Below are positions 222 through 31,946 of a stretch of DNA of 64,000 nucleotides, in pieces. The number at the start of each line of letters is the position of its first letter. Position 1 is the first letter of the stretch. The notes below the pieces were generated by a model that was not told the DNA's origin, did not search any database, and saw only the letters and a list, made by a program, of their open reading frames with translations. The stretch spans positions 73,408,001 through 73,472,000 of the forward strand of contig NC_092347.1 in the NCBI RefSeq assembly GCF_963676685.1, written 5' to 3'. The position numbers and the translations under genes were made by a program. Origin of the DNA: Mytilus edulis (taxonomy: Eukaryota).

Positions 222-255
222 TATATAAACGAATAAATTCTGAGTTCCTTCAGTT
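222..255 (+). promoter_or_regulatory. Core promoter: TATA box (TATATAAA 222..229) and Inr (TCAGTT 250..255)
   Basis: Canonical ~28-30 nt TATA-to-Inr spacing, followed by ATG at 279 and a GTAAGT donor at 303. Confidence 0.65.
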
Positions 256-278: not shown

Positions 279-302
279 ATGACAAAAGCTACAATGATTT
301 CA
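279..302 (+). CDS. Exon 1 of putative IL-6-family-like helical cytokine (MTKATMIS)
   Basis: ATG at 279 (second ATG at 294), 8 codons, perfect GTAAGT donor at 303, phase 0, in frame with exon 2. Confidence 0.65.
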
Positions 303-363
303 GTAAGTATGTCGCATTAGCATATCACATCATCTTATTACATTACAGAGGTACCAGTTTTAT

Positions 364-459
364 CAATCTTATTAAAATATTGATCTCTGATTTCGTTATA
401 CGGCATATGAGCTCATCTGTAGTTTAACGAAATCAGAGATCAATATTTTAATTAGATTG
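364..459. mobile_element. 96-bp hairpin MITE with 9-bp target-site duplication (Mutator-like) in intron 1
   Basis: Near-perfect ~35-bp inverted arms (caatct...agattg) flanked by CAGTTTTAT at 355..363 and 460..468. Confidence 0.65.
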
Positions 460-1176
460 CAGTTTTATATGAATCACTACTGTTTAATTTATGTATATTC
501 TAATTTGTACTGTTTAATTTATGTAAATTCTGATTAGAACCAAAGCTTGCAGATGGTTAACTTTCTTAATTGTTTGCGAATTTTGTCATGTTTATTTAGA
601 ATCATAAAAGCTAAAGAATTTTACTAATGTCTATCATCAAGTCTTCATTTTCAAGAACGATTATAATTTATTGAAATAAATTTTATTCAATTCATACAAA
701 ATTACACATACAGTAAAATCAGAGATTTTCTAAATGATTTTTTATATTCGTAAATTGTGAACGGATAGGTTTCGAAATAAAAAAAAGTATTTTGACTTTT
801 AACAGCATTATTTTGTGCAAATCTTTTATTGAACCATGAATAGAAATGTTATTGTTTTATCCGTTGTTCAATAATCCAATAATAATAAATGCATGCAGTT
901 TCTGAATTTAAAGTCTTCACCTTTCAAAATTCTGACTTAAAAATTGTAATACTGATACACGTACGTCACCAAACGTGCATGAAATGTATACAAATTTCAG
1001 TTCTAAGATTTATGGTGGTAGTTAAAATGACACTTAGGTTATATTTCTAATGATACCAAATATTGAATCTACGCAGAAAATAATCCTGGTAATTTTATAA
1101 ATCAAGTACTACTAGACATAAGTAAAGAATATTTTATGACTTATTTACGCCATAATTGAATGTAAAAAATGCTGGT

Positions 1177-1257
1177 TGGTGACCTTCTGCTGTTGTCTGT
1201 TCTATGGTCGGGTCGTTGTCTTTTTGATACATTCCCCATTTTCATTTTCAATTTTAT
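1177..1257 (+). mobile_element. Short 3'-end fragment of the Penelope-like element family seen at 13447 and 34021
   Basis: ggtgaccttctgctgttgtctg...cattccccatt...caatttta matches the 3' terminus of the longer copies. Confidence 0.6.
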
Positions 1258-1289
1258 GATTATCATTTGTGTGCATTCTATTCATATAT

Positions 1290-1567
1290 ACATTTATCGC
1301 TATTTTGTGCATTTTTCTTTTGATCTTTTCTAGTGATAATTTTCATATCATGCTTCTCGCTTGAGATGGAAAAATTATCGCTAGAAACTAAGGAGGCCAC
1401 GTGGCGTTGCTAACGAAATTGACATGAAATTGACAACGTCGTCATAGGTAAAATAGCGATAAAAAGATTATCATTGGTCATCTCAACTCGATTGCTTTTC
1501 TCACTTTCGCTGTACCAGCTCAAGCGAGAAAATCAATCTCGTTGAGATGATCAACGATAATCTATAA
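1290..1567. mobile_element. Non-autonomous element ending in a long imperfect hairpin (1465..1563)
   Basis: Inverted arms agattatcattggtcatctcaac / gttgagatgatcaacgataatct, plus a second inverted pair tttatcgctatttt / aaaatagcgataaa. Confidence 0.5.
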
Positions 1568-1646
1568 GTACAGCTATGTGAATGGCACTCGAGATCTGAT
1601 ATTTATATAATCAGGAAATATTATCGTCGTATATTGTCGATTTCAG

Positions 1647-1850
1647 AGAATCTCGTTGATAGTTTTATTTTTGTTATGTGCAACACTACTTTGTGATGCA
1701 AAGCCTGGCAATAGAGGTAAACCCCAATGGATAAAAAATGATTCCAGTATTGTTTCAATTTCCTGTCCAGATAACGTACAAAGACTGAGGATACTAGACA
1801 TAATACATTCTGGATTGACACCAACAGCTAAAACTTTGAAGGAGAAAACA
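1647..1850 (+). CDS. Exon 2 of putative IL-6-family-like cytokine (signal peptide and helix A)
   Basis: tttcag acceptor ends at 1646. 68 codons RISLIVLFLLCATLLCDA|KPGNRG...TLKEKT with a hydrophobic signal core and CDA cleavage site. GTAAGT donor at 1851, phase 0. Confidence 0.8.
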
Positions 1851-2440
1851 GTAAGTCAATGTTTATTAACCTTTGTGTGAATTTTATGTTTAACATTACT
1901 GAAAACTAAACATTAAAAAGTAAATTATGTGGTGTAAAAGCGAGATTGTATGCATCTTTGCGGGATCGCTGATCGGCTGATTCAAAAATAAAATACAAAG
2001 TACTGTGAGTACTATAACACAATTCTGAAAAACTTATATAACAATTATCAGTACGTCCATGTCAACTGTTAAATTACAGAAGAAAATGACGTAGATGGAG
2101 ATATTTCAACAAAGACTTAACAAAAATATGCTACTGAAAACGATAAGGTTCTCACTGTTTATTGGCTATTTGAATTTTACTGATTTCGTTTGATGTTTGC
2201 ATCCAGGAAATGTTCTACAACAAACAAAAAACTGCCATTCTTTTTATTATTACGTAGATAAACTCGTTAATTTATTGTTTTTTAGAATGCAACTTTTCTA
2301 TCCAAAATTATTTTTTGTGTTTTTTATGATAATGAATATCTTAGATTTGATGCATGCGTATAATGAATTTATTCAACTATAATTTAAGGGCAAAGGGCAA
2401 TGCAACTGACTTTTATAATCAAATAAAAATATAATTTCAG

Positions 2441-2548
2441 ACATCAAGGATCAATCTACCTTGGATGATGCCATATTTAGATAAAGCTCCTGTATTGGTA
2501 GGATTTCCTTCTTTAGATACTGAGGGAAACTGCTCTATCTGCAATAAG
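2441..2548 (+). CDS. Exon 3 of putative IL-6-family-like cytokine (AB loop)
   Basis: tttcag acceptor ends at 2440. 36 codons TSRINLPWMMPYLDKAPVLVGFPSLDTEGNCSICNK, GTATGA donor at 2549, phase 0. Not in the ORF track. Confidence 0.75.
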
Positions 2549-3165
2549 GTATGACGGTTGTGAGAGATATTACATCTTGTCAAATTTTCTGTAAAACTTA
2601 GTACGGTATTATGCCACCACAACAGATAAATAATTTTTAGTAAATTTTCTGTGAAGGTAGTGTTGTAACTTGTAGAATACCACCACCTCACAAAACATAA
2701 AGTAGAATAAAAAAACTGCCGAACTCCAAGGACATTTTAAAACGGAAAGTCCCTGATCTAATGGGAAAATCAAAAGCTGAAACACATAAAACGCAAGGAA
2801 AAACAACTGTCTTGGTACAGCCATTTTCTTGTGTTGAAAATTTTAGATTAAACCTTTTTATAGCTAGCTTAATCTCTCACTTATATGACAGTCGCATGAT
2901 ATTCCATTATATTGACAACAAAATGTGAAATGTAAAATAACAAAAATACTGAAGGCATATAGACAATGTTTGGCCAAGATGTTACACGTTTTATTTAATC
3001 AAATTCTGTTTATTTCATGGTTGTTTCAATTAAACGAATAATTCCATAAGATGTAATTGGTATAATGTTTTTTTTTTACTTTCTCTCTAGTTATGTTGTA
3101 CTGAAATTTTCATGTATTACAAAATAAAAACTTATTTTTTATTTTTTATTGGATATATTTTGTAG

Positions 3166-3429
3166 ATCAACCCTTGCTTTAAAGCTGACTGTGAGTCCTT
3201 GGGAAACCTGATGATACTTATAAATAATCTCATGTCTTCAATGTATTCTAAAGATATAGCAAATATAACACGTGACTTCTATTTCATCAGAAGGCAAATG
3301 AAATGTGAACCCTTAAGGGTATTCAAGTATAAGGAAGAATGGCAACGAATTGATATAGAGTACAGAATCGCAAAAGATCTCGTTGAATTCGCAGATGCAC
3401 TGCAAAGCCGATATGCTAATATTTATTAA
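3166..3429 (+). CDS. Exon 4 (terminal) of putative IL-6-family-like cytokine (helices B, C, D)
   Basis: ttttgtag acceptor ends at 3165. INPCFKADCESLGNLMILINNL...EEWQRIDIEYRIAKDLVEFADALQSRYANIY*, in frame with ORF 3199..3429. AATAAA at 3705..3710. Confidence 0.8.
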   Translation: MNPCFKADCESLGNLMILINNLMSSMYSKDIANITRDFYFIRRQMKCEPLRVFKYKEEWQRIDIEYRIAKDLVEFADALQSRYANIY

Positions 3430-5698
3430 TATCGCATGAATGTTAATTTGTTATTCGACTATCAGGAATTTAATGTAGTATCTGACTTTTAAAAAAACAG
3501 CAATGAATTTTCAGACAAACTTTTTGAAGCGAAAACTTCAAGTTTATTTCTTTTTCACACAAAAGGACTATATTGATAGACTAACTGTTTACAAAATATG
3601 CATATCTTTACTTTGAATTCATTACATAAAAATATTTTATGGGCTTATTAATATATTTTCCAAATATATGATGCAGCTACGACTGTGATGTTGATTCCAT
3701 CTTTAATAAATACTAACATCTGATTTAGTACTTTCATATATTTTTATAACAGCCTGCAACCTTATCATATAATTAATCTAAATTGCTCGCTCTTATTGTA
3801 CATTACGAAGCTGTACATAGTGATCAATTACTTCTCGTTATAATACAATAGTTTTTTTTTATTAACTAATCCAAGTGCTCTTATAAATATATGAGTAGAA
3901 TAATAAGAATTTGATTATCACTTCAAGACAAAACATGGATTTTTCTCATTGTTGAAGGTCTAACGGCTGCGTATTATTGCTTTCAAACACTTCTGATTAT
4001 TTTTATGTTAATTAATACTTAAATGATTTCAATGATTGAGTAAATTAAAACATTCAACATACATATTTTATTACATAGTTAGTACCCCTTGTTTGTGATA
4101 TTCTCCTGGTAGAAACAATCACCACTTCAGACCATAAGCTGCATCGACTCTTTAATTCATTAAACAAATTATGTACCGAGCTTATAATTTCGCAAAACCG
4201 TCGAAGATGATTTATAAAGCTGAAGCATACAATCGAAATTGTAATTTGTAATAATGATACCATTTTTTTCAATTTTTACCTTAAGATTACTGTAATGATT
4301 GCGTTTCCTGATTGGATTCATTCAAGGTGTTTGATATTTTTATGTTTAAGCCCCCAATGACTTCTATTGTCATAAGTATTATAGGACGCATCTCTTCAGT
4401 AACTCCTTGACCCCTTAAAATTTTCAATTGGTCAAATTTAGATTGTTTATCACTTGTGTTGACAGACCATTGATCTTTATTATGTTTCTAAGTTTCAAAA
4501 TACTTGGAACTAATCCGTTAAAAATGTTTCAATACTTATTGAATTTTAAGGTAATAAAGGGACTTTTAATTTCTCATTACAACCATAATATAATTCTTTT
4601 TAGAAAAAGAAAGAAATCGGAGTTATCTTTCATATACCATAAATACACGATCTCGCCTCCCACGTTACTTATTTGCCAGTTACATAAGTTAACACGGCAT
4701 AACTATATTTTTTAATCTCTTATCATAAATTTTGATGTCTTACGACTTTTAGCATTAATTTGTAAAACGTTATAATTATAAGTAGTGGAGTGACAAATCG
4801 GGAAAAGTCTCTTATTTAAGGAGTTTAATGGACCGAAATACCTCACGGTTGAAAATTCACATGAAGATAGAGTAAACATTATGCATCAAACTTTAATATC
4901 ATATGAACATATAAATTTAGTTAATTGGACGATTTTTAAATGTATGTAACATTTTTTTTCAATCTTACCGTCTATACCGTCTAGCAAATTTTAATACATT
5001 TCTTATATATATATCACCAATAGTAAATGTTCACAAAAAATAGGGGAACAACCAATACTTAAGAAGTTTTGATATATTAAAAAGTGTGATAGAACATACA
5101 AATCAACTTTTACGAGCATTTTTATAAAATTCATCACATAGCAGTATTACTTCTCAATTTTCACCTCAATGAGTCGTGTAACGTTCCCCTTTCCCATTTT
5201 TCCCTGTCATATGAAATGCAATGAATTTGATATGCATTTTCTTACGTTTAATAAAAAAAATTATAGTTGTATCAATAGTTGTCTATTTGTGCTTTAATAA
5301 GTACAGATGCTAAGGTTAATAACTTTTATGGTGCTTTATTCTTGTTTTTCGAAAATACTAATTGTAAACCACATTGGAACACATCCGAAAAATTCCGGAA
5401 AATTATTGTCAGTGCTAATTCCATTAAAGAAGAACGCGTAAAGTAGCTTAGATCGTGTTATTAAGCCTTTACATGTCCATGAAGAAAACATGATCATGCT
5501 TTTGAATTAGTGAGAAAAAAGCATACGTGTAACGATGAATCAACTTTCGTTAAAACACGCTTCATGGCATTACCATGACTGGTATAACTTTACATGTCTA
5601 TTCTGGAGACAAAAGTCATACAACAAGCTAAGTAATTAAGGCATGTCGATTCATTTGAGCGTTTCGATATTGTTTTAAATGACGCAAATTATCAGGTA

Positions 5699-17350: not shown

Positions 17351-18669
17351 ATGGATAACCATAGTTCACCTTCGAAAAGTTATGCATATTTTCAAAATGA
17401 ACAGGATTCTCTTAATAGTAATTGTCATACTTTGTCTATGCCATTCAATGGAGGCACCATCTTTACAACAATTTGTGGAGAAGGGACCTACATCGAAAAT
17501 AATTGTCCATATCCAGAACACAAAAAATGTAGTATGCTCCAAGGAGAACTTCCATCTAAAGATGGAAAAGTTAAGACATCGAAAAGAAGAATCACGAAAT
17601 CAATTCGCGTACACAATGATTCAAAATCAAGCAGTCAATTTGAAGAGTTTGTTCATGATGTTTTCAGCAATAGAACCACCAACAAGACTTCTGCTGGGAA
17701 TCCACATACTAGTATTCAGAAAGGCAACCATAAACAAGTTTTGTCATGCACAAATTTAATACAAGAGACATCGGAACACAAATGTTCGTTTCATTACGAA
17801 ACACCATTCGTAAACAAAGAAAGAAATCACAAAAAACAACATTGTCAAAATAAACCTAACGAAGGGTTAATGGACTATTCGCTTTATTCAAATTTCACAG
17901 TTGTTGATATAGAGCTTTATCATTCTGATACAGAATATTTTATGCAAATGGATAAGTTTAAACCCTCCAACAAAATTCCTGCTAGTAACTCACATACTAG
18001 TACCAAAAAAGTCAGTAATGAACACGTGCTGTTAGGTGCGAAGTTATTTCAAGAGACATCGGACTCCAAATTTTCGTTCAATTGCGAAAAATTATTTGTA
18101 AGCAGTGAAAAAAATAACAGTATACAAAATTGTCATAGTAAACAAATAGAAGGATTGAGTGACTCTGCGCTTTCCTCAAATTTTTCTGTGGTTGATGTAG
18201 AGCTTTATCAGTCTGATAGAGCATATTTTATGCAATTGGATAAGTTTAAACCCTCCAACAAAATTCCTGCTAGTAGTTCAAATACTAGTACCCAAAGAGT
18301 CAGTAATGAACACGTGTTGTCAGGTGCGAAGTTAATTCAAGAGACATCGGACTCCGGGATTCCATTTGTAAACAAGGAAAGATATAACAATTTACAGAAT
18401 TGTCATAATAAACAAATAGAAGGATTAAGCGACTATTCGCTTTCTTCAAATTTCACAGTTGTTGATGTAGAGCCTTATCAGACTGATAGAGCATATTTTA
18501 TGCAATTGGATAAGTTGTGTATCCAGCAGGGTAAACCCTGGACTCGAGAATATGTATCTGAGGTACAAAACAACGTACTGATGCAAAATACCGCACCTGA
18601 CCTGAAACATAATTGCCTCCTGACTGAGGATAACAAACATGAAGTATCACAGGAAAAAGGAGTAGTAGA
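17351..18669 (+). CDS. Coding exon 1 of TRIF/TRAM (TICAM)-like cytoplasmic TIR protein, repeat-containing N-terminus
   Basis: tttcag acceptor ends at 17310; in-frame TGA immediately before ATG 17351; 439 codons + 2 nt; GTAAGT donor at 18670 (phase 2). Confidence 0.8.
17669..18514 (+). repeat. Three in-frame coding tandem repeats (288, 288, 270 nt)
   Basis: Units end in YFMQ(M/L)DK; gataag at 17951, 18239 and 18509. Confidence 0.85.
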
Positions 18670-19304
18670 GTAAGTTTGAAAAGGATGGCTTCACGGCTAT
18701 TAGATATTTAAAATTATAAAAGTAAAACGGAATTGACAACACCATGTCGAGGGAGGGGGAGAGGTAAAAAAAAATGACAAACAATATTACGAGTAAGCGA
18801 AGACAAAAACGTGAAAAATACATGAACAACTACAGCTAACTGTAAAGCATGAAATCGAAAAGGAACTGACAATATCATTGAAAAACGACGAAAAGACAAT
18901 AAAAGTCTACACAAATTACATAGAAAATTAAATCCTGATCAATTGCACCAATAACAATAATTTATCTCAGGGACTTTACAAGGTAGAACGGTTAGCCGAC
19001 CCTACTACACGTGTGGCACCCGTCGACCTGTAAGTGATTATAACAAGGTCATTGTTCATTCTCCTTCGGTTATTTCACAACGGAGATGTTTATAATGTAC
19101 TGTTTCAAACATATCCCAAATTCGGATGCTCTTTAATTTTAATATGAAAACCTTTTCTTATATATTTTGGTTTTTTTTTATCCTACGCTCACATTTATTT
19201 TCGTTTTGCATCTGACCTCAACGCTTGTCGTGTCAATATGAATGCTATTATACAAAATTCTCGTGAATCACAATGTATTCAGATTTAACAACGTTTCATT
19301 ACAG

Positions 19305-24031: not shown

Positions 24032-24690
24032 ATACGTTTAATGTTAGTGGTAAGCCGTTTAAAGACTTGGAAAGATACGTCATTGAAAATTACCAAAGAG
24101 TTCCAGATGTCATTAAGCATAAATACTTCGATGCAACAGTAGTTTACCATGAGGACGATAGGTATGAAGCTGAAAAATTCCGAAATCATATAACAACACA
24201 AAATACACGCCAACCTCTAAGCATAGCTATGTACGATGGACCTGATTTAGAGCATATGTCACGATCAAAATTGGAACTACTTGAAATGATGTGTGAATTT
24301 TCAACATTTATAATAATATTTTTTACTGAAAATGTTATGCTGAGAGCAAATTTCTGGAGATTAGATAAACCATTCAGCCCATCAACACATGATTCTGAAG
24401 ATGAATGGTTATATATGTTTAACTCCATTTGCGTTAAATATTGTAGAACAGGAAAAGTAATACCAGTTAAAAACAGAACGCGTTTAAGGCTTCCACTCAG
24501 TTTAATAGCACTTAGGTCATTTGACTATTCACAACAAGATGATCAGTGCATTGCGAAATTGTACAAAATTATTTTTGAAAAAAGAGATCAACGAATAAAA
24601 AGAGAGATCGTTTTATTAAAGAAACAATTCGATTATCTAATGAAAAATCGACATTTGTGTGTATCATCATCAAAATTTGGGTCTATTTAG
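24032..24690 (+). CDS. Terminal exon of TICAM-like protein encoding the TIR domain
   Basis: Poly-T ag acceptor ends at 24031; phase 1 entry in frame with ORF 24067. YFDATVVYHEDDRYEAEKF, STFIIIFFTEN, KVIPV and RLPLSLIAL align by eye to TRAM FVILHAEDDTDEALRV, SAWTILLLTEN, SVIPM and RTPFALQTI. Confidence 0.8.
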
Positions 24691-29387: not shown

Positions 29388-31946
29388 TTACAGTATGTCT
29401 GCAATGAGAGCTCTTCTTAAGTTTTCCCAGTCATTTTCATTCTCCGCTTCACTCCAATTTATTAAAATTACATCATTTAAAATATGTTCAAATTCTGTTG
29501 GAAAATTTTCTACTGGCACCTGCCTTGTAACTATTATAATTTTCTGTAAATTGCTTGCATATTTTTCATACTTCGCTCTTTCAATTTCAAAACGCCCCCA
29601 GTGTTTGTCTGAAAAATCTTTTGTTATCACAAAAATAATGTTCCGGCTTTGCTGGATTGAGTCACAAATGGCATCTACATAAGCATCGCCAACGGAGATA
29701 TCACGATCTTCAAGGCACATTTTCATTTTCCAGGAATTTTCAATTTTCGGCATTAGGAGATTTTTCACCCAGTAAAGACTTTGATTTGAATACGATAAAT
29801 AAATATCATACACAAATTTCTTTTTAAGTTCTGTTTCAACAGCTTTCCGAAATTTTCGATAAAACCAATACGTTATTTGCCATTTGAAATTTATAATAAG
29901 AGCTAAAGGGACGGTAATGGTGATAAACGAAACAAGCAATCCAATGCCGACTCGAAGCCATATTTCATTGTGACAGATACTGAAATAGTCATGAAACTTT
30001 TGATAAACTTTGATAGTTGTAGTAATAGAACCATTACTCAACATACATTTATATTGTTTGTTTGGTTCATCAAATTCAATATTAGTTTCAAATAACCATC
30101 GAATGAAATCTTTTGTTTCACAGGTACACTTAAATATGTTTCTTTTCAGAAATAGCTTGAAAGTCCCATTCTTTTTCTGTTGTTTGTCAAGCCAGTTCCT
30201 CATAGTTGCGTTTATCGAATCTAAAATATTTCCCGAAAAATCAAGAAAATTTAATTTCTCTAGCGGCATTAAAGCCGTTGGTAACTCATCAAATAAATTA
30301 CCCTGCATTATAAGTTTTCTTAATTTTTGGTTATAAAAAAAGGTATCGTATCTAAGTTGCCATAACTGGTTACCAGAAATGTCTAATTCTTCTACTTCTG
30401 GAATGAAACTAAAATAGTGTCGGGTATGTTGAACAGTCTGCCATATCCCAGTAAAACCAAGAATCACGGTTGTCGAATTTGCAAATAACGACATTGAAGT
30501 GTTCCAAGACGGAATTCCAGAAAAATCTATATACTTGATGTTATTTTCACCTTTTAATTCAATTTCAGGAAAATTTCTTATATTGACGTATGCCAAATCT
30601 AAATATGTCAGATTTGAAGCATTCAAGAATACTATTTTGTTCCTAAGTTGTTGATTTGCAAGGTAGTATCTGTGTCGTATCTGTCTCAAGTTTGGGGGAA
30701 GCGGAAGGTGTACAGTCTGCACAGGAGATTCCCTTGCTGGTGTAACAGAATTTCGTTTTCCTAGACACAGAGGCTTGTCACTTTCTGTATTTTTCCAAAA
30801 AATTGAATTAAAGTTCGATAACTTATTGTCATGAAGAATTTTAATGTTTTGTTCAACATTTCTGTACGAAAGAGGATTATAAGACATGTCAAACGATATC
30901 AGGTTGGTAAGCTTTCTACTAATATCCCATAACTCTGTCAATTTGAATCCGTTGATCAGGGAAAACCTATTACCTGACAATTCTATGTTTTGTATGCATT
31001 CTGGGTATCGGTTCCACAACAAGGACTTAGGTTCAAAATCAGCAATCCCATTCTCTGTCAAAACTAACGTATTGAAACAAATTTTCTGCAAATGCTGCAT
31101 CATTTGTCTTGTTAGTATAACTGCAGATGGCGTTTCTATGGGACATTTGTACCCTGGATTAACTCTTGTGAACTGAATCCTGCGCATTTGCTTATTTTCA
31201 AATGGATACAATAATTTTAAGGCAGATTCCAATGTCATGTTTGAATGATGTATAACTAATGTTTTCAAATTTCGTAATGATCGGAAGGCGTCAGCTTCAA
31301 TACTGCGAATCATGTTACATTTCCTCAAATGTATTTCTTCCAAATTTTCTGGTAGCATTGAGAACGTGTTGTTCAATATCAATCTTAAATCACAGTTTTC
31401 AAAGACGATTTTAGTTATATTTTGTAGTTTTTCGAACCCACAATTGTCAAAACCAGGATCACCAATCAAATCCAAAGATAACTCCTTTAAATTGGAAAGG
31501 TTTTCAAACAAAGGATATTGTACTTTTGATGTATATTCTTTTTTCATATTATGTCTTATATCTAGCATTTCAAGTCTTTTTAGAGGACGAAAAACGTCGA
31601 CTTCGTAAGACACAGAAAAATCCAGATTGTTGTTGGTTAAAAAAAGACCATGAAGATGTTCCAAGCCATCAAATGCATTTGTTGGAAGAAATGAAATGTT
31701 ATTGTTATCAAGATGAAGAGTTTTCAGATTACGATATTTCCCCAACACATCACCATCTATTCGATGTATTACATTGAACTTCAAATCCAAAACAACAATA
31801 CTGTCTGGTAAATCATTCGGAACATTTCTAAGTTCTTTATAAGAGCAATTGGCAGTGAAATCATGTATTTCGCAAATATGAGCATGACATTTGTAGCGTT
31901 CTAAGCAAAAGACGAATACCATTATCGTAATTTGAAATAAATCCAT
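29388..31946 (-). CDS. Toll-like receptor, single cysteine cluster type, intronless, 852 aa
   Basis: Signal peptide; LRRNT (CEIHDFTANCSYKELRNVP); many LxxLxLxxN repeats; LRRCT (NIFKCTCETKDFIRWL...YKC); TM (IWLRVGIGLLVSFITITVPLALII); TIR boxes YDIYLSYS, CLEDRDISVG, WGRFEI, WENLRRAL. Confidence 0.97.
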   Translation of the reverse strand: MDLFQITIMVFVFCLERYKCHAHICEIHDFTANCSYKELRNVPNDLPDSIVVLDLKFNVIHRIDGDVLGKYRNLKTLHLDNNNISFLPTNAFDGLEHLHGLFLTNNNLDFSVSYEVDVFRPLKRLEMLDIRHNMKKEYTSKVQYPLFENLSNLKELSLDLIGDPGFDNCGFEKLQNITKIVFENCDLRLILNNTFSMLPENLEEIHLRKCNMIRSIEADAFRSLRNLKTLVIHHSNMTLESALKLLYPFENKQMRRIQFTRVNPGYKCPIETPSAVILTRQMMQHLQKICFNTLVLTENGIADFEPKSLLWNRYPECIQNIELSGNRFSLINGFKLTELWDISRKLTNLISFDMSYNPLSYRNVEQNIKILHDNKLSNFNSIFWKNTESDKPLCLGKRNSVTPARESPVQTVHLPLPPNLRQIRHRYYLANQQLRNKIVFLNASNLTYLDLAYVNIRNFPEIELKGENNIKYIDFSGIPSWNTSMSLFANSTTVILGFTGIWQTVQHTRHYFSFIPEVEELDISGNQLWQLRYDTFFYNQKLRKLIMQGNLFDELPTALMPLEKLNFLDFSGNILDSINATMRNWLDKQQKKNGTFKLFLKRNIFKCTCETKDFIRWLFETNIEFDEPNKQYKCMLSNGSITTTIKVYQKFHDYFSICHNEIWLRVGIGLLVSFITITVPLALIINFKWQITYWFYRKFRKAVETELKKKFVYDIYLSYSNQSLYWVKNLLMPKIENSWKMKMCLEDRDISVGDAYVDAICDSIQQSRNIIFVITKDFSDKHWGRFEIERAKYEKYASNLQKIIIVTRQVPVENFPTEFEHILNDVILINWSEAENENDWENLRRALIADIL

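Follow-up and report, generated by a model that had tools for sequence, protein, structure and literature searches.

Introduction

An IL6R-like receptor, JAK and STAT have been reported in Mollusca with no ligand, and a 2026 survey detected IL-6-family cytokines only in vertebrates, raising the possibility that ligands of another kind act on the receptor-kinase-STAT module of molluscs (PMC13203501). In protostomes, Drosophila Upd1-3 are the Domeless ligands for JAK/STAT and are described as IL-6-like helical cytokines (PMC13203501). The only published claim of a bivalve helical cytokine is the oyster CgIFNLP, a class-II-like protein with an interferon (IFN) domain and a JAK/STAT-linked receptor (PMC9756803). 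The literature we searched held neither a description of a molluscan IL-6-type ligand nor an earlier description of the Mytilus family reported here. We analyzed a 64,000-nucleotide stretch of the Mytilus edulis genome (NC_092347.1, positions 73,408,001 to 73,472,000 of the forward strand; hereafter the window), focusing on the four-exon gene at window positions 279 to 3,429. An earlier note, made from the DNA letters alone, had proposed it as a hidden gene for an IL-6/G-CSF-family four-helix cytokine. Our analysis suggests a new sequence-orphan family that is predicted to fold as class-I long-chain cytokines do, a fold so far unrecognised among molluscs.

Results

Gene structure and annotation

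The gene lies on the plus strand of M. edulis C4 (NC_092347.1) at 73,408,279-73,411,429, and its four coding exons give stop-free translations of 8, 68, 36 and 87 aa followed by TAA. Exon 1 (279..302, 8 codons) encodes the start Met and the n-region of the putative signal peptide, and ends at its GTAAGT donor; intron 1 (303..1646) falls inside the signal peptide. Exon 2 (1647..1850, 68 codons) encodes the hydrophobic signal core, the predicted cleavage site at about A26/K27, the N39 glycosylation sequon, Cys48 and helix A (residues 49-77; helix limits here and below are those assigned by DSSP in the structural model described in the next section), and intron 2 (1851..2440) is placed at the end of this helix. 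Exon 3 (2441..2548) was confirmed by translation to have the 36 codons counted previously; it covers the AB loop with a short modelled helix (83-91), the P-Y-L-D ... G-F-P block, sequon N106, Cys107 and Cys110, and is followed by intron 3 (2549..3165) at the start of helix B. Exon 4 (3166..3429, 87 codons and TAA) encodes modelled helices B (110-134), C (137-157) and D (173-196), Cys116, Cys121 and Cys159, and sequon N145. All three introns are in phase 0, with donors GTAAGT, GTAAGT and GTATGA and acceptors TTTCAG, TTTCAG and TTGTAG.

The 199-aa product is identical to RefSeq XP_071169166.1 (P0009 below), named "uncharacterized protein isoform X3 [Mytilus edulis]". The exons served as separate queries, and that of exon 4, run against 1.84 billion representative proteins, returned a 199-aa protein, matched over residues 113-199, with XP_071169166.1 in its 90% cluster. 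The four translations fall at offsets 0, 8, 76 and 112 of XP_071169166.1 and leave no further residues, so an independent public gene model has the same junctions. Full-length analyses were run on this database protein. Annotated orthologues were detected in M. trossulus, M. galloprovincialis and M. coruscus with 75-98% identity. The exons, the GT-AG phase-0 introns and the product read by the earlier note were thus borne out. Its description of the gene as hidden did not hold, as the product is already listed in RefSeq and in three further Mytilus annotations, under the name of an uncharacterized protein and without an assigned function.

The locus is a true protein-coding gene of M. edulis. 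Exons 2, 3 and 4 are recognisable in five paralogues with the GT and AG sites at identical codon positions, and the ratio of nonsynonymous to synonymous substitution rates (dN/dS, from sums over three exon-wise alignments) is 0.2-0.6 among family members; the least saturated pair, L016/L017, has dN 0.048, dS 0.223 and a ratio of 0.22. These ratios indicate that the family copies are coding genes under constraint, and together with the exon layout and splice positions kept by the five intact paralogues they show that the gene is not a chance open reading frame (ORF).

RefSeq isoform X2 (P0007, XP_071169165.1, 208 aa) has 17 other N-terminal residues in place of the eight of exon 1. A search of the window and of the 11.6 kb upstream of it did not detect the first exon of this isoform, suggesting that the exon is further away or split.

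Predicted fold and its neighbours among known structures

AlphaFold2 (AF2) was run for P0009 on a 17-row family alignment. The model has a core predicted local distance difference test (pLDDT) of about 85-96 and a predicted template modelling score (pTM) of 0.69. Its four long helices are joined by long AB and CD connections and by a BC turn of only two residues, the arrangement seen in up-up-down-down cytokines. The paralogue P0012, 37% identical, was modelled with the same helix layout (mean pLDDT 80.5, pTM 0.77).

The Foldseek search of the PDB with the P0009 model returned long-chain helical cytokines in all 49 matches listed. The best was G-CSF (E 0.03, probability 1.0, target TM-score 0.58-0.62), followed by IL-11, leptin, IL-27, IL-6, IL-23 and growth hormone (GH). 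Comparison with 48,161 representative chains by VIA-align gave IL-11 (Z 12.5), LIF (12.3), IL-23p19 (12.2) and IL-6 (12.1), with CLCF1 (11.9), IL-31 (11.5) and viral IL-6 (11.2) among further matches. Helical cytokines filled each of the top 31 places among the 48,161 chains (Z 12.5 to 7.1); the best-scoring unrelated bundle followed at Z 6.7. When the Foldseek list was realigned, IL-11 reached Z 13.4 (145 residues, 3.5 Å), LIF 12.7, and G-CSF, IL-6 and CNTF 12.1, with GH, prolactin and leptin at 11.2-11.4. Sequential alignments to IL-11, LIF, IL-6 and G-CSF covered 135-147 residues with a root-mean-square deviation mostly of 3.0-3.5 Å and up to 4.5 Å for some LIF chains. The P0012 model gave IL-23p19 (Z 11.9), IL-11 (11.4) and IL-12p35 (11.3), and its top 24 matches were all cytokines.

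A search by ESM Atlas features, which is alignment-free, was done for both P0009 and P0012 and led to IL-6, IL-6-like, IL-11, IL-12a and G-CSF-like clusters. It also detected a 114-member cluster of mostly molluscan hypothetical proteins (representative 229 aa; score 0.92, 203 of 256 features shared), 11% of them with PF00489, which hints at more IL-6-like proteins in molluscs.

These data support a long-chain class-I helical cytokine as the predicted fold, and the long-chain four-helix bundle matching IL-11, LIF, G-CSF and IL-6 that had been expected from AlphaFold and Foldseek was obtained in the models. VIA-align rows within 1 Z count as ties, so that the fold cannot single out IL-6/G-CSF from the gp130, IL-12-alpha and G-CSF group; IL-6/G-CSF, IL-11, LIF, the IL-12-family alpha subunits, GH/prolactin and leptin all lie within about 2 Z. 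The family is better classed as a new, very divergent one with the IL-6/IL-11/LIF/G-CSF/IL-12-alpha fold than as an IL-6 or G-CSF orthologue. Of the previously proposed identity, the four-helix cytokine part is supported by AF2, Foldseek, VIA-align and ESM Atlas, and strict membership of the IL-6/G-CSF family is not supported by the sequence tests given below.

The same structural searches bear on whether the protein is instead a class-II helical cytokine of the interferon/IL-10 type, similar to CgIFNLP, with an antiviral role through a class-II-like receptor. Type-I IFNs were indeed among the matches, IFN-beta at Z 9.9 and fish IFNs at 9.0-9.5 for P0009, and 8.4-8.7 for P0012. The class-I long-chain cytokines, however, scored 2.5-3.5 Z higher and took the first 14 places with both models, while IL-22 and IL-20 reached only Z 6.1-7.8 in both VIA-align searches. 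The ESM Atlas matches listed contained no interferon or IL-10 cluster, and the models have four long helices with short loop helices, in contrast to the five to seven helices of class II. In its first exon of eight codons the mussel gene is closer to IL-6/G-CSF than to IFN genes. In favour of class II, the only published bivalve candidate is class-II-like, and the 0-0-0 intron phases of the mussel gene match the pattern described for IFN genes, namely 0-0-0-0 in the classical genes and 0-0-0 in the four-exon lamprey Ifn2/3 (bioRxiv 10.64898/2026.05.30.728932). Taken together, we consider a class-II cytokine improbable.

Sequence searches and competing explanations

Several results weigh against the cytokine assignment. 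No match to the Pfam IL6 (PF00489) or GCSF (PF16647) family was detected by hmmscan at E up to 10 with the three longer exon translations and eight family proteins; neither the PDB sequence search with exon 4 nor the family profile search returned a cytokine, and PF00489 found nothing real in the whole genome. The signature of the IL-6/G-CSF/MGF family, C-x9-C-x6-G-L-x2-[FY]-x3-L (PMC5716431, PMC3271213), was found by regular-expression scan in none of the eight family proteins. Receptor profiles PF09240 and PF06328 gave no usable genome match in six-frame, exon-level searches, a result which does not imply absence. On the structural side, the Foldseek E-values are weak, 0.03 at best, and a Z below about 13 may, by VIA-align's own note, be a common arrangement for helical bundles. 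Both AF2 alignments are shallow (16-17 rows, one family) and overlapping, and two of the five P0009 models are poor, with mean pLDDT 40-45. Finally, proteins with the same fold may still differ in function.

The searches also produced candidates that we rejected: sub-threshold Pfam matches to ParB-CE, VP6 and HEPN, considered noise; PDB matches to troponin I and RNase P at E 0.2-1.5, considered chance; and the single PF00489 genome match (C11, 18.7 bits), a low-complexity translation with stops.

The weak P0009 models and the closely related rows, most of them shared between the P0009 and P0012 runs, could mean that the cytokine-like fold is a product of modelling from shallow alignments and that the true structure is different. 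We find this very improbable. All five P0012 models have mean pLDDT 76-80, the core reaches about 85-96 in both proteins, and the alignment-free ESM features agree with the AF2 fold. Moreover, Cys121 (early helix B) and Cys159 (just past helix C) are at the same end of the modelled bundle, which fits their joint loss in natural variants.

Unlikely, but with more in its favour, is a secreted four-helix protein with a non-cytokine function (haemolymph carrier, antimicrobial, adhesive or reproductive), the likeness to cytokines being convergent or architectural. Tandem, fast-diverging secreted families of mussels are often effectors and not signals; the family has no sequence homology to cytokines, is seen by sequence only in Mytilus and a few Logan/ENA records, and its helical-bundle Z of 12-13 is inconclusive according to the VIA-align note. 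On the other hand, the matches are confined to up-up-down-down cytokines and cover 135-147 residues of 157-178-residue chains, with ordinary bundles at Z 6.7 or lower, and the independent language-model search of ESM Atlas lands on the same cytokine families. Size, signal peptide, glycosylation sites, loop lengths and introns at helix boundaries all suit a helical cytokine, which we continue to prefer.

Two residue-level arguments for IL-6 kinship had been made previously. The first was a near match to the signature, and this amounts to a resemblance: the window protein reads C107-x8-C116-x6-S-L-x2-L-x3-I, with x8 in place of x9, and at three of the five non-Cys positions it has S, L and I instead of the prescribed G, [FY] and L. 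Of the signature residues, the two Cys and the two Leu are all that the paralogues retain, and even a relaxed form is missing from two members. The second was a site-III Trp. The codon for Trp171 (3340..3342) was found as described, two residues before modelled helix D, and the Trp is shared by the orthologues; most paralogues have Phe at this position (several of them F-Q-E-K) and one has Cys, while Gln172 is nearly invariant. We take the position before helix D to be that of the site-III Trp in IL-6 and IL-11 and of F-x-x-K in LIF/CNTF/OSM. By this analogy, residue 171 may serve as a lead for mutagenesis, and it gives no support for gp130 binding.

The secreted product and its gene family

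The N-terminus reads as a signal peptide: its n-region is basic, its hydrophobic core spans 13 residues, and K27 is preceded by C-D-A, which places small residues at -3 and -1; the segment has low pLDDT in the AF2 model. We predict from these features a cleavable signal peptide of about 26 residues, in agreement with the cleavage after about A26 proposed earlier, and a secreted mature protein of about 173 residues. The mature part has the six Cys (48, 107, 110, 116, 121, 159) and the three N-glycosylation sequons (N39-D-S, N106-C-S, N145-I-T) that had been listed. Cys121 and Cys159 are both missing in the family members P0012 and L020, and Cys48 and Cys107 are both missing in P0003. Such paired loss points to disulfides 121-159 and 48-107, leaving 110-116, and we infer three disulfides in the product.

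The gene belongs to a tandem family. The genome search detected paralogous last exons, all on the plus strand, at C4 73.267, 73.286, 73.300, 73.346 and 73.395 Mb and one more on contig C12. The same-strand cluster comprises about six copies across about 150 kb, with the window gene as the 3'-most member. Across the family, helix A keeps R-L-x-I-L and A-x-x-L-K, the AB loop keeps a P-Y-L-D-x-A-P ... G-F-P block, helix B opens with C-F-x-x-D-C, helix C contains S-S-x-Y, and helix D contains Q-x-x-D-x-x-Y-x-I-A-K-D and R-Y. Two profile searches of a 5.8-billion-protein collection, the second at E up to 10, found no member beyond Mytilus and a few Logan/ENA records. The orthologues looked for in other bivalves were thus detected in the three other Mytilus species, and none was found in these searches outside that range.

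The nearest copy, L015 (C4:73392815-73395146), is located 16 kb upstream of the window gene with about 90% DNA identity. Its exon 1 is intact and its exon 2 is 80% identical at the protein level, while about 730 nt of unrelated DNA stand in place of the exon 3 segment and the reading frame of exon 4 is broken, so L015 is probably a pseudogene. The C12 copy, L017 (C12:30707000-30713800), is on another chromosome-scale contig and is close to the C4 copy L016, as the substitution rates given above indicate. So small a difference suggests that the gene was recently duplicated between chromosomes or that the copy was misplaced in the assembly.

Other features of the locus

Regular-expression scans of the plus strand detected a TATA box, TATATAA, at 222..228, about 50 nt 5' of the start codon, and an AATAAA at 3705..3710, about 275 nt past the stop codon, which is likely the polyadenylation signal. 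The ATTTA motifs of the 3' untranslated region were dropped as evidence, their density (6.6 per kb) being no higher than that of intron 1 (6.7 per kb). Intron 1 has two hairpin palindromes, at 364-459 and 1465-1563, with 48-nt arms that are 90% and 83% complementary, respectively, and 0-3 nt between the arms. The block 1297-1567, holding the second hairpin, is missing from the duplicate copy L015 and therefore looks like an insertion similar to a miniature inverted-repeat transposable element.

Downstream in the window, a repeat-rich 440-aa ORF (17351-18673, plus strand) precedes a 207-aa ORF with TIR-like sequence (24067-24690, plus strand). An 852-aa single-exon ORF on the minus strand (29388-31946) encodes leucine-rich repeats, a transmembrane segment and a TIR-like tail, the composition of a Toll-like receptor. 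Measured from the cytokine-like gene, these ORFs are 14-28 kb downstream. With a TIR-adaptor-like gene and a Toll-like receptor gene so near, involvement in immunity is a reasonable starting hypothesis.

Discussion

On balance we think it fairly probable that the product of the gene is a long-chain helical cytokine that is secreted, carries glycans and disulfides, and acts through a gp130/Domeless-class receptor on JAK/STAT, the receptor use and signalling being suggested by the modelled fold. The signal peptide of about 26 residues would be removed and the glycosylated mature protein of about 173 residues secreted. The protein would then bind its receptor, one of the gp130/Domeless class that has a cytokine-binding homology region, using the A/C and A/D helix faces together with the N-terminal end of helix D, and the binding would lead to JAK and STAT activation. 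The pathway is present in this animal: the M. edulis genome contains a STAT DNA-binding exon.

The Mytilus family provides, from its predicted fold, concrete candidates for the missing molluscan JAK/STAT ligand and bears on the age of class-I helical cytokines. More tentatively, the family may share an ancestral gene with the vertebrate IL-6/IL-11/LIF/G-CSF/IL-12-alpha cytokines and comprise the missing ligands of the molluscan IL6R/gp130/Domeless-type receptor; we regard this wider proposal as possible and rather doubtful. If true, long-chain class-I cytokines would predate the protostome/deuterostome split, and members of the W type and of the F-x-x-K type might differ in the combination of receptors that they use.

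Comparison with known cytokine systems

In its predicted long-chain four-helix fold (Z 12-13.4 over 135-147 residues), the mussel protein is like the gp130-family cytokines and G-CSF (IL-6, IL-11, LIF, CNTF, CLCF1, OSM; PF00489, PF07400, PF16647). It shares with them a predicted secretion, a mature length of about 170 aa, a long AB loop with a short helix, a tight BC turn, Cys clustered where the AB loop meets helix B, and an aromatic residue just before helix D. In contrast to them, it has no detectable sequence similarity, does not have the signature, and belongs to a tandem multigene family.

The human IL-6 disulfides are C44-C50 and C73-C83; the mussel protein has a Cys pair at the junction of AB loop and helix B, in another framework, with six Cys in the three putative pairs proposed above instead of the two pairs of IL-6. 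The IL-6 gene has five exons and four introns (PMC5716431, PMC3271213). The mussel gene differs in having three introns, none of which separates helix C from helix D. Its very short first coding exon, the phase-0 introns that follow helix A and open helix B, and the 36 codons of the exon flanked by these two introns are reminiscent of the IL-6 and G-CSF genes. Introns occur at corresponding places in those genes, where the exon bounded by the last two of them has 38 codons in IL-6 and 36 in G-CSF; one further intron lies past helix C, and the first intron is in phase 1, while that of the mussel gene is in phase 0. The mussel gene structure is suggestive and not specific because the all-phase-0 pattern is also reported as a hallmark of interferon genes.

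The IL-12-family alpha subunits are as close in the predicted fold as the gp130 cytokines, with p19 at Z 12.2 and 11.9, p35 at 11.0 and 11.3, and p28 at 11.1 and 11.2 for P0009 and P0012, respectively, and IL-12a clusters are among the top ESM Atlas neighbours. These subunits form heterodimers with a soluble receptor-like beta subunit and have no sequence similarity to the mussel protein. A beta-type partner did not turn up in our analysis, in which no search aimed at it was made.

The Upd proteins are, like the mussel family, undetectable by sequence from vertebrate cytokines, and they are about twice the length of the mussel protein. No similarity between the mussel protein and Upd was detected, no Upd cluster was present among the ESM Atlas matches listed, and the structural matches contained no solved Upd structure. 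With respect to CgIFNLP, the mussel family scores higher against class-I cytokines and is set apart from the oyster protein by the class-II-like description of the latter.

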